A DNA stretch of 63,987 nucleotides, the filler included, from Salisapilia sapeloensis CBS 127946 (taxonomy: Eukaryota > Protista > Oomycota), in the NCBI GenBank assembly GCA_023334545.1. It is 6 parts of 6 records of this genome, joined end to end, with 100 filler letters (N's around TTAATTAATTAA, not from the genome) between each part and the next. Parts side by side here need not be neighbours in the genome. Positions count along the whole stretch, not along the records: positions 29,032 to 56,338 come from JAADVB010000237.1; 5 more parts are not named here. One strand, 5' to 3'. The notes beneath the pieces were generated by a model, which saw only the letters and a list, made by a program, of their open reading frames with translations, made no database searches and was not told the DNA's origin. Numbering within the stretch: position 1 is the stretch's first letter; each line of letters opens with the position of its first letter. Made by a program: the position numbers and the translations under genes. Shown piece after piece: positions 45,263 to 56,080 of this stretch.

Positions 45263-46072
45263 CTACGAGTCACCATCAAAGTCGCCATCCATGTCACCCA
45301 TGTCGCCCGTATCGCCCATATCGCCCATAAAGTCTCCCGTATCACCTGCAAACTCCTGCGTCGTAGGCTCTTGACGTCCCCAGTCCCCGCGCATGGCTGA
45401 ATCCAAAAGCATGCCTGTCGCCAGTCCACCTACAGCCCCCGTTGCTCCAGCAGCCCACGAGTTTCCTGTGCCTCGTTGCTCGTACATGGGTGGCGCAGAC
45501 GGCTGCGCGTACCCAGGAGTCGACTGCTGAGGCCCATAATACCCCTGAGGAGGAGCAGTACCATATTGCTGAGCCGGGTACATTGGCTGCGCATACGGCA
45601 CACCTGCGTCGCCACGGCCATGTTCGTGAACATGTTCATAACCATGATGATCTCCATGATGCGACTCGCGATTCGAGCAGCAGCAACATAGACAGCAGGC
45701 TAGTAAAAGTACTGGTAGGATCCAAGACATAGAGCTCGAATGAGATGCTTGTGAGTGAGGATATCCTTGGTGGTACGCGGCGCGCCGACAACGACAGTCA
45801 TATGTGTTATACACACATTCCGCATCAGCAGGACAGCAGCATGGTGAGCCGGATCCGACGGTCTTGCAAAACTTGCCTGGAGCGCCATGGAATGCATGTT
45901 GACAATCCCCTCGAATCATACAAGCGTTGCAACCGGCTGACGATGCTCGCAGTGTCGAGTCAACGGTGAACTCTGTCATGGTCATGTTGCTAAAGCTTTG
46001 CTCCAGTCCAAATGCAGGAAGGTAGCATAAGAGTGTAACGAGCCCTGCCAAAAGTAGCTTCTGTCGGATCAT
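45263..46072 (-). CDS. Single-pass membrane protein: signal peptide, Cys-rich ectodomain, TM with Cys cluster, Pro/Tyr/Gln/Gly-rich tail
   Basis: MIRQKLLLAGLVTLLCYLPAFG; CNAC...C...C...CCCP..AEC...CRC; WILPVLLLACCLCCCC; PPMY; GD-repeat C-terminus. Confidence 0.75.
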   Translation of the reverse strand: MIRQKLLLAGLVTLLCYLPAFGLEQSFSNMTMTEFTVDSTLRASSAGCNACMIRGDCQHAFHGAPGKFCKTVGSGSPCCCPADAECVYNTYDCRCRRAAYHQGYPHSQASHSSSMSWILPVLLLACCLCCCCSNRESHHGDHHGYEHVHEHGRGDAGVPYAQPMYPAQQYGTAPPQGYYGPQQSTPGYAQPSAPPMYEQRGTGNSWAAGATGAVGGLATGMLLDSAMRGDWGRQEPTTQEFAGDTGDFMGDMGDTGDMGDMDGDFDGDS

Positions 46073-46218
46073 TAGGGCGATCGATTTCTTTGACTTGACG
46101 ATGGATTGGCAGAGAAAGACAAAACGGCGTGATGATTGGATAAAACACAGTATCTTGAAGAGATGTAGCCTCGGACTATGTCGCTTCATCCAAGTGACAG
46201 TACTCCGTTACCAGTAGC

Positions 46219-50048: not shown

Positions 50049-51044
50049 ATGTCTGCGAACGAAAACACCGACGTACCGGCTGAATGGACCATCGACCAGG
50101 TCCCACCGCAAACGGGCAAGGTTGCCATTGTCACTGGGGCCAATTGTGGCATCGGCTACGTCGAGGCAAGAGAGCTTGCTCGGAAAGGGGCGCATGTCAT
50201 CTGCGCTTGTCGTAGCAAGGAGCGAGGCGAGAAAGCTGTCAAAGACATTCAAGAAGAGCTCAAGGCTGACGAAAATGCTACTGGCAAAGTCGAATTTATG
50301 CAACTGGATGTAGCTGACTTGGACAGCGTTCGTAAATTCGCGGACGGATTCCGCCAATCGTTCAGCAAGCTGGACATCCTATTGAATAACGCCGGTGTGA
50401 TGGCCATTGGGTATCAAGAGACACCGCAGGGATATGAGACTCAGTTTACTGTCAACCATCTCGGCCACTTCGCATTGACTGCCCAGCTCTTCGACCTCTT
50501 GCGTAAGAGCGACAGCGCACGTGTAGTGAACGTGAGTAGCATCATGCACTGGTATGCGCGCGACTTTAACGAGGACGAGATCATGCGCCCACAGTCTAAG
50601 TACTCTCCAAACTCGGTCTACAGCGACTCCAAGCTCTGCAACCTCCTATTCACTCTCGAGCTTGACCGTCGCCTGAAGGCTGCTGGCATTGACAACGTCA
50701 AGTCGGTATCTGCCCACCCTGGCATTACCGACTCCAATCTAACGGGACCGCCGAGTGAAAATAACTCGTGGCACTGGCGTCTCCTCTACAAGATTAATGT
50801 CGCCATCATGCAAATATTCAGGCTGAAAAGCCCAACGACTATGGGAGCAGCACCCGAACTCTACGCTGCTACCGGCGAAAACATGAATGGAGGCGATTAT
50901 GTCGGTCCAAACGGATTTAGGCACATTCGCGGGTACCCAGCGAAAGAAGAACCCACGGTACAAGCCAAGTCCGAGACTGCTGCCAAGAAGCTTTGGGCGT
51001 ATAGCGAACAGCTAGCAAGCGTCAACTTCAAGATAAGTAAATAA
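50049..51044 (+). CDS. Short-chain dehydrogenase/reductase, RDH/WWOX-like
   Basis: TGANCGIG, LLNNAGVM, NHLGHFALT, VVNVSS, YSDSK catalytic motif, HPG. Confidence 0.95.
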   Translation: MSANENTDVPAEWTIDQVPPQTGKVAIVTGANCGIGYVEARELARKGAHVICACRSKERGEKAVKDIQEELKADENATGKVEFMQLDVADLDSVRKFADGFRQSFSKLDILLNNAGVMAIGYQETPQGYETQFTVNHLGHFALTAQLFDLLRKSDSARVVNVSSIMHWYARDFNEDEIMRPQSKYSPNSVYSDSKLCNLLFTLELDRRLKAAGIDNVKSVSAHPGITDSNLTGPPSENNSWHWRLLYKINVAIMQIFRLKSPTTMGAAPELYAATGENMNGGDYVGPNGFRHIRGYPAKEEPTVQAKSETAAKKLWAYSEQLASVNFKISK

Positions 51045-51448
51045 ACAAGCTTACTAGCGACCATTTGCTTCCATGTCGAGGTGCCAACGAGTGTTCAAAG
51101 TCATCGATTGCATGCAAAGTTCGACTACTAAAATTATCATATCTGATCCCATATTCCATCTAATCTATCGCCCAATCGAGTTTCTGGTGGAAACCTGGGT
51201 TGGGACCACCGACTATAGCTATCGAGTATGCGATGCAACGTTTATCGACGGTATGCTCATCGTGTGTCTATTGACAGCAATATGGACCTACTTTAACCTA
51301 AGCTACCGTGCTTATCGATGGGAATTAAAATCAAGTACAGATCGTCATCAGCGTTGAGAACAGAATATCTACTGGAATGTCATGTGATGCTTACCCGCTC
51401 ACCGTACACTCTTGCCTTCATCATATTTCATTTTCCCTTGAACGAAAG

Positions 51449-53375
51449 ATGCCGCCAAGCACTCTCACGCCCCTTTGCATTGCGATTCTCCTACTCTTGA
51501 CACGCGTCCAAGGAAATCAAACCGCTATCATTGACGGTATCAGCGGAGAATCGCTTGCAGAGCTTCTCTTGGGAGCCAAAAAAATGTGCTTATTTGCAAT
51601 TCTGCTGCTATTTCGTCTACTGATGCAATGCTACCATAATAGAGTGCTTAAAAACGAAGGATGGAAAACGCTCAACGCTGCAGACGTCCCAAAAGCAGAA
51701 GAATTGTACGTCAATTCGATACGAAGTACTTGGATAGGTCTGACTGAGTCTCAACCGGTTTGTTTCTATGAGCAGACATCTACAAGGCAATCCCATTGAA
51801 TCGATAAATGGCGTCTTTGAGCATCTAAAAATCTTGTAAGCTGCCCTGGAAACGATCAACCAATTCTATTGTCCTCACTTGAGTGCATAGGAAATTGAAT
51901 CATGCGAAGATGAAAGAGTTGGATGCGGAAATGTTTCCAAAGCTAAAATCCTTGTATGTCCCTGCAATCGTATTAATACAATTCAGGCAATGCTTTTACT
52001 GATGCCGTTAATTAGAATGTACATCAATGGGGAGCTTGAGGAGTTTTCTGGCGAGTGGAAGCATCTGGAGTATTTGTACGTTGCATTCAAACTTTAGATG
52101 AAGATATAAAAAATCTTTTCAAGGTGTTAATGTGCTCTTTTGAACAGAGATTTGGCTGCCAACAAACTGGCAAAGTTTGACAATAAACTTCCAAATATTA
52201 GATGGCTGTAGGTTACGTTTATTCGACTCTTAGGATACCACTCCCTTATGCACGACTTTGACTGTAGGCGGCTGAGCAAGAACCAATTGACAGAATTCAA
52301 TTGCAAATACGACAAGCTAAAAAGCCTGTATGCCTTCATATTTTCCGCTCACACCATCTTGATGACATTTAATAAATATAGACGTATTGCGGACAACAAG
52401 TTGGCGACGAGCACGATAAAGACCAAATGCTCGAAGCTTAAAACGCTGTAAGCTAATCTTTACTATTGGGTCCGAGGCTTATCTAATGAACGCTTGTATC
52501 GTATATAGAGATTTGGGGGGCAACAAAATGAATCACTTTGGCGATGGAATTGCTGCAAAGTTTGGAAAGCATCTTCGAGTTCTGTACGCCTCGCTCTTAT
52601 GAATGGCCAAAACCAAGTTCTAAGACTATCTATATACGTGTGCGTGTAGATATGCCGGTCACAACGAAATGAAGATATTTGATGGCATGTGGGAGGAACT
52701 GAAAGAGCTGTAAGCTCCTTTTTTGCCTCAAATACTTTCGATGGATACTAACTTGATTTATGGTGCTACCAGGTACATTGACCACAATGAGATCATTCGA
52801 GTCAAGGCCTATCTTCCCAAGATCATCAAGATGTAAGTGGAGTAACGATGCTACAAGCTATACATATACCAACATCTGGACGTGTAGAGATGCTAGTCAT
52901 AATAAGCTATACGGAGAAGGTTTTCAGATCAAGCCACGAGACGAGTGGGGACAAACATCGGTGACGACGCTCGATTCATTGTACATATCATTTTGCGCTT
53001 TCGTCTCCATGAGGTTTAGAGATTAACTGATGATCGAGTAGAGACTTGTCTTACAATGACGAAGGAGAGGCTTTGAAAGTTCGGTTCGCCTCCGGACAAC
53101 ATCTAAAATACCTGTAGATTTGTCTGACTTACTCATTGGCAAGCCTGCACTAACTTGTATGAATGATAGGAATGTTAAGAAGAGCAGGACGAAGGATTGT
53201 AAGTTCTACATGTCCCGAGGCTATGACAAGCTGTAAGTTTACATATAGATGACCAAAACGTCCATTTGCTGACTTGTTATGTAGTATCCTGCCCAACGGC
53301 AATGAAATGACGAACAGAGACATGCCATACAAGGATTGGTCTGGCATGTACGATGGAACGAATAAGATTAAGTAG
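51449..53375 (+). CDS. Secreted leucine-rich-repeat protein, 15 exons, about 360 aa, one repeat per exon
   Basis: Exons 51449-51585, 51643-51705, 51776-51835, 51891-51953, 52016-52075, 52148-52207, 52268-52327, 52382-52447, 52509-52583, 52650-52709, 52773-52832, 52888-52980, 53042-53113, 53170-53232, 53285-53375 splice GT-AG into one open frame with a signal peptide and xLxxNxLxxF...LxxL repeats. Confidence 0.88.
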
Positions 53376-53491
53376 CATGTGATCAAGGGAGATTGACTAC
53401 CTACGAGTCTATTCGAATCGACTTTTCAACAAGCACAAGCGTTTAATTTCGAAATCACTTTGATGTTTCCTTCTCCTTTCTGTCGACATGA

Positions 53492-55037
53492 TCACTTCTC
53501 CAGCTTCTCTTCTGCCAGCTCCGCCGCCATCTTCTGCTGCTGTCCTAGAATCCGGCCAGCATCCAGCTCCAGCAGATGCAAGTACCTCGCCTGCAGCGCC
53601 GTCGGTTTCCTCAGCACTTCTTCCAGCTGATCCACCCTCTTCTTGGTCGTCAAGACTGCGGCCTCCACTTCGGCCAGTCGAGCAGCATCCATACCTCTCT
53701 TCTTGATCAACTTTTTTAATCGACTCTGATACACATAGTCGTAAATGTTCTCATATTCGTACTCTTGGTTCGTGATGCTCCACCACAGGTACCCGATGAT
53801 GGATACACCGAAGCCTGTGAAGTACGTAACAGGTTCCATGATATCCCATGAAAAATGAATGAACGACAGGTAGAAGTACAAGCCGAAGCCGCCGACGAGG
53901 GTCGTCGTCATGGCGGCAGAGGTACCGTTGGCGGCCCGTACGGCGGCCTTCTCCAGCTCTTTTTCCAAACCTTTGAGCGCTTTGTACTCTGGTTCCCTTT
54001 CGTCGATAAAGGCACGAAGGCGGTCTCGTTCCTTCATGAAGAGTTGGGTCGAGACAGGGGTGAGGCCGATGGACTTGAGGTAGGAGTCGAGGATGCTTCG
54101 AGGCTGGAGGAAGATCGAGTGCTCCAGGTCCTCGTCACCAGACTGTCCAAAGTAAAAGACCGTTCCAGCATGATGGAATGCGTTGAGCACCTCTGCTGCC
54201 TGCGTCTTGGCGATCCCATGTTCTTCACACATCAAGCTGAATTCCTACTAACGAATTAGAGCGAGAGGAGACACGATTGAATACAAAAGGCATACAGAGT
54301 ACGAGATCTTCCACTTGTGGAGCGTGCTGAGCGTGTGGCGGAGTGCGATGACAGCAGACTTTTGAGTGACGGCACGGACGTCGAGGTCGCCACTGTCCAT
54401 AATGCTAGTATACGCATCTCCTACGTGCGTTGTTAGTCAAAATTACACTTACATAAGCCGTTCAACGTACCGATGAACACTGGAGCTCGGACGGAGTACA
54501 CTTTATCGTTGATGGCTAGCTTGAAGTCGTCGCTTAGAACGGAATGCAGCGAATCGCTCGAGAGATACGGGTCTCCTTTCCTCGTCTGCAGAACAATTTC
54601 CTGGATAGAACTGTCCTCGCTTTTGATCTGAGCTGCCACATCCTTCACCGTCGAGTCTATAAAGAAATTATTTATCATCCAAAAGCACATGCCGACGGAA
54701 TGCAACGAACCCAACGAAAGACTGAAGACTCGCTGCTCTTCATTGCCTTTAAGAGGCAATGGGATCGAAATCGCACACGCTCCATTCATGTACTGCATCT
54801 CGAGCGACTGGCGAGCTAAACCAGTGCACAATGAGCTATTTAGTTGCTAGAGAGAGCGTCAGATTGAGTACCATAGGGAGACGATAGGATCGAGGTAGTG
54901 GAAATGGGACTCGTCATAAGCTGTGGGCTGAATCTGAGCTGATGCTTGGACTCTGTCAGAAAGCCATGTCGGACTGAGCTCGAGGAGGAAAAGGAAGGAC
55001 GAATTCGCCCTAGGGAGCGCACGGTGGACCGGATCAT
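53492..55037 (-). CDS. MCU: Mitochondrial calcium uniporter, multi-exon
   Basis: Two TM helices flanking FSWDIMEPVTYF, coiled coils on both sides, presequence-like MIRSTVRSLGRIRPSFSS. Confidence 0.93.
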
Positions 55038-55266
55038 CCTCGATGTGGATTGCAATGTGCAGCTCGTCGTGAGCTCGTGGCATCGTCGTCTCGATATATT
55101 ACACTCCTAAATACCCAGTTCGGCGTTTTCAGTGACACCATTATTCTCGACTATCCGAATTTTATGTCTTCGGATCTACCTCATACAAAACCAAAGTGTA
55201 GTAATCCGAAAAGCGGTGCGTTCGGTCACCTGAGATCCGAAACGAATCGGCGTGGCACAAGTAAAA

Positions 55267-56080
55267 ATGTCGGGAGTTGGTGCTGTCGTCGATGCTGTCT
55301 TCGGCTCCTACGATCTTAAGAATGCCAAGCAGTGGCGTGATGAAGACTTACAATTCCGCGAGCAAGAAAAGCAGTGGAGAGAGGACACCATCTCTCGGGA
55401 ACTCGCCTGGCGGCAGGACGACCTGGAGCGCCGGCGTCGAGTGCTCAAACTCGAGAACGAGAAGCGTGCTATTGATGCTCGTCATAAGCAGTTGTCGGCT
55501 CTGTCTCAGCTGACTGCCATGATCGGAGGTTTCTCCATGGTCTCGCTCGTTGAGATCAATCTTCCTGAGGACTTGAACGAATTCCTCTTGTTCATATACG
55601 GCGCCATCGTCTGCCTACAGGTAGCATTCTATATCGTACAGCCACATTCGACCAAACTAACCCCTTTGAATCTAGTTTATCTGCATGCTATTGTGCATGC
55701 TTATGTGTACTCTGCTGCTTCTAGCTGTGACTCGATACGTTACGCACAAGTTGGAAGCGGAAGTGCTGTCCTTGAGCTCCATCGAGCTAGACCTCCACTC
55801 TCCGTTTGCACACTTTTGGATGAAGACTTGTGAGAACGAATGGTTGGGTGCGTTCCGTCTATTTAGACTAGGCGTTCACTTCTTACTCATGGAGGTGTCG
55901 CTCTTAGGATGGGTAGTCTTTGGTCAATCGTTAGCGGCAGCCATTTGCATCACAATCCTCAGTGCCGTCGCCATGCTGTACTTTTACCTGCATATCTCCA
56001 GTCGATGGAGGTACCTCGTCAAGCCACCAAAACTCCACTCTATTAACCGAACCGACTCTGTATTTGAAAATGCTCCCTGA
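55267..56080 (+). CDS. ORAI: Orai/CRAC-type Ca2+ channel; intron 55621-55675
   Basis: TM1 LTAMIGGFSMVSLVE aligns to Orai1 SALLSGFAMVAMVE (E106); TM3 LGVHFLLMEVSLLGWVVF aligns to IGTLLFLAEVVLLCWVKF (E190); four TM segments. Confidence 0.85.

Follow-up and report, generated by a model that had tools for sequence, protein, structure and literature searches.

The interval 51449-53375 on the plus strand of the window (the whole stretch of DNA that was analysed, 63,987 nt in length) raises the question of whether a gene of many small exons lies there, what kind of protein it would encode, and whether its exon design is used to vary that protein. A preliminary description had proposed that 15 exons, with all introns in phase 2, are joined at this place into a secreted leucine-rich-repeat (LRR) protein carrying one repeat per exon. 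As stated there, the region has no long ORF; the single ORF above 90 aa has 140 aa (51377-51799) and corresponds to exon 1, intron 1 and exon 2 in read-through. To rebuild the gene model, GT..AG introns of 40-130 nt were enumerated under the constraint of the 13 predicted internal exon sizes. This enumeration reproduced the predicted model, i.e., 15 GT-AG exons that yield a stop-free protein of 360 aa, together with a second solution that has a different last acceptor and is otherwise identical.

In the reproduced model, exon 1 (51449-51585) contains the start codon, a predicted signal peptide and the beginning of the N-terminal cap, and is separated by the putative intron 1 (51586-51642; 57 nt, with the donor GTGCTT and a branch-like ACTGATG as in introns 4 and 12) from exon 2 (51643-51705; 63 nt), which encodes part of the cap or a degenerate first repeat. 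Exons 3-5 (51776-51835, 51891-51953 and 52016-52075) encode one LRR each. The core LRRs are found in exons 6-8 (52148-52207, 52268-52327 and 52382-52447) and exons 9-11 (52509-52583, 52650-52709 and 52773-52832), followed by longer, degenerate repeats and the C-terminal cap in exons 12-14 (52888-52980, 53042-53113 and 53170-53232). Exon 15 (53285-53375) ends the gene with a hydrophilic C-terminal tail and the stop codon, and has no TM/GPI-like hydrophobic end.

The frame-preserving design was confirmed in full, with exon sizes as they had been claimed. All 13 internal exons are multiples of three (63, 60, 63, 60, 60, 60, 66, 75, 60, 60, 93, 72 and 63 nt), six to seven of them being exactly 60 nt and the others 63-93 nt, and all 14 introns are in phase 2, with lengths of 52-72 nt and a GC content of 0.31-0.45. 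The codon split by the introns is Leu in 12 cases (TT followed by A or G, or CT followed by N) and Ile in two, which agrees with the earlier remark that it is nearly always a Leu codon. Since the first base of the downstream exon is a purine in 13 of 14 cases, Leu would usually be kept after any exon swap. Donors of introns 2-14 are of the GTA type, and several introns (4, 10, 12, 13 and 14, and also 1) have a CTAAC/CTGAC/CTGAT-like motif located 11-26 nt before the AG. Introns 1 (51586-51642) and 7 (52328-52381) are themselves multiples of three without an in-frame stop, so that their retention would keep the reading frame. A stop-free frame of 360 codons over 15 pieces, with every intron in one phase, is far beyond chance.

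Transcription and splicing were assessed with RNA contigs of four public runs from one organism, aligned to 51250-53550; the runs represent two samples, of which one gave X1 and X3 and the other (S2) gave X2 and X4. Contigs of the four runs contain 13 of the 14 predicted junctions (all except that of intron 1) exactly and with no mismatches, including 51705/51776, 51835/51891 and 51953/52016 and likewise all junctions of exons 6-11. Exons 2-15 are therefore real, transcribed and spliced as predicted, and the multi-exon gene that had been described as hidden exists at least over this part. Beyond 53550 the long contigs continue for about 1.2 kb and enter the MCU gene, which is convergent and on the minus strand, and because of this merging their depth is not that of the LRR gene; the contig over exons 2-5 stands alone only in X2, where its depth is 9.6. 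The MCU stop codon lies 116 nt from the end of the LRR gene, and since contigs continue from the last LRR exon into MCU, the 3' UTRs of the two genes overlap or abut.

The exon-encoded pieces can be aligned in register (alignment A1) as x-L-x-x-N-x-L-x-x-F-(5-6 x)-L-x-x followed by the split Leu, having Leu at position 2, Asn at 5 and Leu at 7, then an aromatic or aliphatic residue and a terminal L-x-x-L. As judged from sequence, this pattern is that of the LRR core L-x-x-L-x-L-x-x-N-x-L; the exon boundary falls on the Leu ahead of x-L-x-x-N. The ladder Asn at exon position 5 is kept in nine of the 11 core repeats. A repeat profile of 19 positions, built from the exon-encoded repeats and searched against 1.84 billion cluster representatives (E ≤ 1e-3), matched 10 proteins; six of the 10 were scanned with Pfam, and all six passed the LRR_4/LRR_8 thresholds. 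The best three matches (P0218, P0222 and P0223) are metagenomic proteins with a 20-aa unit and an N-x-L-T-x-F motif. When the spliced protein was compared by phmmer, it reached 67-75 bits with these three and 52-75 bits with the best four, in comparison to at most 12 bits for 200 shuffles. Within the spliced protein the profile recognises 13 units, with 9-18 bits per repeat in exons 6-11, whereas the last repeats are degenerate. With this profile the spliced protein would score 136.5 bits at equal library size and the best library match scored 79, which indicates that the searched representatives include neither this protein nor any close relative of it. A comparison of the profile with the PDB gave no significant match. 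The predicted product is thus an LRR-superfamily protein composed of LRRs only, and the proposal of one repeat per exon, mostly as short 20-aa units, holds for each internal exon. In P0222, an F-box-like motif apparently precedes the repeats, although the Pfam scan listed no F-box family at E ≤ 0.001, and the 20-aa-unit class of repeats may also occur in intracellular adaptor-type proteins.

The LRR gene is part of a series of Med27, a CDC14-like phosphatase, PRMT5, a PA-domain protein, a weak SARAF-like ORF, Vps35, a short-chain dehydrogenase (SDR), the LRR gene itself, MCU (convergent with it) and an Orai-like gene. The neighbouring genes are uninterrupted ORFs of 300-600 aa, which makes 14 introns in 1.9 kb a local outlier. 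The best named homologues of SDR (up to 58% identity) and Vps35 (up to 46%) are all from oomycetes, with Saprolegniales more distant, and by sequence the host is a divergent, intron-poor, oomycete-like stramenopile. A GC trough coincides with the LRR gene (51032-53031), where the region has a GC content of 0.41-0.43 and the CDS has a GC of 0.44 and a GC3 of 0.53; three of four neighbouring genes have a GC of about 0.53 and a GC3 of 0.61-0.69, and the fourth, the ORF at 45263-46189, has a GC3 of 0.50. Three calcium-handling genes lie within 11 kb, i.e., the weak SARAF-like ORF (45263-46189, minus strand), MCU (53492-54831, minus strand) and an Orai-1-like channel (55252-55833, plus strand), the last two being divergent and about 420 nt apart. 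Part of the MCU ORF (53495-54235, minus strand) has a sub-threshold Pfam COR-A match (E 8e-4, 19.8 bits vs a cut-off of 35.3), which is probably due to chance.

Four loci of relatives (L001-L004) were reached through the Vps35 and SDR homologues and searched with the repeat profile in six frames and by tblastn; none of them contains an LRR exon array, and their gene order matches that of the window only in part. One of these loci (L001, 1-11827, on a relative's Logan genomic contig) has the order PRMT5-PA domain-Vps35 in common with the window. Another Logan contig of a relative (L002, 692-5382) has MCU directly upstream of Vps35, unlike the window. Neither L001 nor L002 encodes an SDR or an LRR gene at the corresponding place.

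A different reading would take the locus as a relic, decaying or without function although still transcribed, or the gene model as over-fitted. Consistent with such a reading, no orthologue was detected by the repeat profile among the 1.84 billion representatives or in the four relatives' loci, GC3 is low relative to the neighbours, and the last repeats have degenerated. Nevertheless, the 360-codon frame is intact over 15 exons, 13 junctions are precisely spliced in RNA, and the Asn ladder and the Leu scaffold are kept in most repeats; a relic or a fitting artefact is hardly credible.

The 5' end is the part of the model where the RNA contigs are split. Exon 1 is covered by contigs in all four runs, at a depth of about 5-9 (4.6 in X2), and the junction of exon 1 with exon 2 (51585/51643) was found in no contig of the four runs. 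Contigs over exon 1 end at 51559, 51584, 51598 and 51618, two of them reaching into intron 1, and the main contigs start at 51639, 51645, 51665 and 51666, the first of these positions being within intron 1. The donor of intron 1 (GTGCTT) scores -0.7 with a matrix made from the other 13 donors, which themselves score 8-12, whereas in length, GC content, ACTGATG branch motif and phase 2 this intron is like the other introns of the gene. The breaks of the contigs between exons 1 and 2 would be accounted for if such a weak intron were partially retained; intron 1, if retained, would add a second hydrophobic stretch to the protein. An alternative 5' model, with a donor at 51537 and an exon start at 51645, is in frame and was rejected because its donor scores worse than that at 51586. 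A further uncertainty for the predicted N-terminus comes from an alternative in-frame ATG upstream (51377-51379), which adds 24 aa; RNA contigs in three runs start upstream of this ATG, and the first in-frame stop above it is at 51326.

Hydropathy analysis of the 360-aa protein revealed a single hydrophobic stretch, at the N-terminus (core residues ~6-17), and neither a TM segment nor a GPI-like end. The stretch is followed by V-Q-G ahead of a likely cleavage site (V and G at -3/-1) and then by an N-Q-T sequon. Based on the contig breaks, it could be argued that the main transcript begins at about 51639-51666 and is translated from the AUG of exon 4 into a cytosolic LRR scaffold of 267 aa without a signal peptide, while exon 1 would form part of an upstream transcript that is minor or unspliced. 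In each of the four runs the main contigs do begin within that range, no contig joins exons 1 and 2 across the atypical donor, and the mature protein has only three Cys and, unlike typical extracellular LRR proteins, no Cys-rich caps. However, such a transcript would carry three out-of-frame AUGs with short ORFs before its first in-frame AUG, while exon 1 is an open frame with the textbook shape of a signal peptide that joins exon 2 in phase 2 through an intron resembling the others. In X2, moreover, the depth of exon 1 is close to that of the contig over exons 2-5, and a graph branch resulting from partial intron retention would break the contigs at the same place. We therefore regard the cytosolic scaffold as unlikely, and the form with the signal peptide as the probable one. 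Secretion of the LRR protein is plausible given the predicted signal peptide and the lack of an anchor. As to the earlier claim of a secreted protein, the sequence has the shape of a signal peptide and no TM segment and exon 1 is transcribed, but the donor proved weak and the splice from exon 1 to exon 2 is present in no contig of the four runs.

The RNA contigs also revealed an alternative isoform. A contig of X4 joins 52069 to 52268 with six letters, ATGGCT, in between, a contig of X2 stops exactly at 52069, and in the sample of these two runs exon 6 has a contig depth of 0. Within the interval, ATGGCT occurs only once (52202-52207), with an AG before it and the normal donor of intron 6 after it. 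The alternative intron (52070-52201, plus strand, 132 nt) uses a cryptic donor, GTATTT, at 52070, which cuts off the last 6 nt of exon 5, together with a cryptic acceptor (..TTAG) ending at 52201, which leaves only the last 6 nt of exon 6. Although 132 nt of the genome are removed, the net loss from the mRNA is 60 nt, which is exactly one repeat and in register; the 6-nt exon ATGGCT keeps the frame and the predicted product, of 340 aa, contains one repeat that is a hybrid of exons 5 and 6. In the other sample (X1 and X3) the contigs, which can show presence and not absence, contain the canonical path alone. A genomic deletion and a template switch of the reverse transcriptase were both rejected as the source, in view of the GT..AG ends, the lack of microhomology and the otherwise 100% identity of both samples to the window. 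The short isoform arises by splicing at cryptic in-register sites, not by the skipping of a whole exon, and the modular exon design yields at least one in-frame variant in repeat number.

How the array was formed is indicated by its uniformity in structure and its divergence in sequence. Pairwise comparison showed that the exons and introns of the LRR gene are hardly more alike than shuffled sequence, and no DNA tandem repeat was found in the gene, from which it follows that the array is old. Recent duplication of the LRR exons was rejected on the basis of these tests, in accordance with the preliminary description. Given that all 14 introns share the same phase and the same position in the repeat in an otherwise intron-poor genome, the array most likely goes back to an exon-intron unit that was duplicated in tandem in the distant past; the long uninterrupted ORFs of the neighbours likewise make the 14 introns fit a propagation by unit duplication. 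The paralogue search that had been suggested was carried out on the 27-kb piece that contains the gene and on the four relatives' loci, and no paralogue was found there.

The preliminary description had gone further and suggested a combinatorially variable secreted recognition protein, made so by exon skipping or shuffling. On this view, regulated skipping or swapping of the LRR exons, or shuffling among paralogues, would generate many binding specificities in the manner of DSCAM or of the brown-algal ROCO genes. The design would permit this, as the internal exons are all symmetric (2-2) multiples of three and Leu is usually kept after a swap; the short in-register isoform is dominant or co-dominant among the contigs of one sample and unseen in the other, and alternative splicing of a similar array has been reported in Ectocarpus (PMC11378527). 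Only a single variant was seen, though, and it results from cryptic sites instead of exon skipping, while the other 11 confirmed junctions are canonical only in every run, in contigs that drop rare variants. In addition, the 27-kb piece contains no paralogue, and there is no nucleotide similarity among exons or introns to promote recombination. Of the suggested variability, what stands is one in-frame isoform shorter by one repeat in one of two samples, with no exon skipping or swapping seen, and we consider a combinatorial recognition protein quite unlikely.

Taken together, the locus is probably a functional, expressed gene for an LRR-only solenoid of about 360 aa, in which the repeats are placed on symmetric phase-2 exons and which likely serves as an extracellular binding module. 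In such a protein, an N-terminal cap, about 11-12 repeats (mostly of 20 aa, with L-x-x-L before and x-L-x-x-N-x-L-x-x-F after the exon boundary) and a C-terminal cap would form the solenoid. The array would have grown long ago by tandem duplication of the exon-plus-intron unit, with subsequent divergence of the copies, and its symmetric exons would let repeat units disappear or be added with the frame intact; alternative splicing makes at least one variant of this kind, which has 340 aa and one repeat fewer. With exon 1 attached, the signal peptide and the lack of an anchor suggest that the protein would most likely act extracellularly or within the secretory pathway, presumably in binding. 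It is also conceivable, although decidedly improbable, that the array stays intron-rich for in-register splicing which alters, condition by condition, the repeat number and the binding surface of a secreted LRR protein belonging to a family that diversifies in this way; if true, this would be a counterpart, at the level of splicing, to variable LRR receptors.

Genes with exons of 20 codons escape ordinary gene callers of the ORF-based or prokaryote-style kind, and would not be revealed by ORF-style calls on the relatives' genomic contigs. Should the organism be pathogenic or be parasitised itself, a secreted LRR-only protein would be a candidate binding or recognition factor. With the present gene, the phase-2 design with one LRR per exon is now also seen for a unit of 60 nt/20 aa and in an oomycete-like lineage, where the introns are very short, and the RNA evidence adds that the design does give an in-frame variant one repeat shorter; the current understanding of LRR gene evolution is not changed by it.

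The closest known systems are the ROCO and LRR-only genes of brown algae, in which 72-bp phase-2 exons encode one repeat each and are subject to exon shuffling and alternative splicing (PMC3341825, PMC11378527). The comparison with Ectocarpus ROCO genes that had been drawn beforehand is apt. The type I LRR exon arrays of Ectocarpus and Saccharina have in common with the present gene the stramenopile host, one LRR per exon, phase 2, exons in multiples of three, the existence of LRR-only genes and splicing that changes the LRR content. They differ in the unit, which is 72 bp with a 24-aa period (23 whole codons and the split codon) in brown algae and 60 bp with 20 aa here, and, unlike the brown-algal arrays, the present one has introns of only 52-72 nt and strongly diverged repeats with no sign of recent shuffling. 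A ROC-COR region after the LRRs is absent, as the ORF ends 29 aa past the last repeat exon and the next gene is MCU on the opposite strand.

Tandem LRR exons, phase-2 introns and an amino acid split between exons are also found in the LRR genes of Tetrahymena, which have 90-bp exons, more than 96% of introns in phase 2, a split 'junction' amino acid and an origin explained by clonal exon duplication (PMC6564038). In this ciliate, the unit is 90 bp, the genes number in the thousands and recent expansions are visible in the nucleotides, whereas a single old array was seen here. For vertebrates, PMC11378527 cites the LRR exons of gonadotropin receptors as all being in phase 2. The glycoprotein-hormone receptors have LRR exons of similar size in one phase, a modular arrangement in which in-frame splice variants are possible; unlike the LRR gene here, they are receptor ectodomains with other domains, longer repeats and long introns. 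The LRR exons of the NLRP genes are likewise of similar size, in one phase and modular, and belong to NLR sensors, in which other domains are present, the repeats are longer and the introns are long.

With regard to the repeat itself, PMC3986869 and the reference cited there give the 20-residue repeat of YopM as the lower limit of known LRR length. The present repeats share this 20-aa unit with the YopM-type LRRs. YopM and IpaH repeats carry a proline-rich 'LP' motif, and no conserved Pro motif was found in the repeats of the LRR gene in alignment A1. Furthermore, YopM and IpaH are intronless bacterial type III effectors, in contrast to a gene with 14 predicted introns. The N-x-L-T-x-F motif of P0218, P0222 and P0223 is common to the LRR gene. 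Among oomycetes, the LRR receptors reported to date are kinases that have about two LRRs (PMC2939053); they combine extracellular LRRs with a TM segment and a kinase, while the protein described here is LRR-only with about 12 repeats. Phase-2 arrays with one LRR per exon and alternative splicing have already been published, and the LRR gene is a further example, whose distinctive features are the 60-nt unit, the very short introns, the lineage and the isoform made from in-register cryptic sites.
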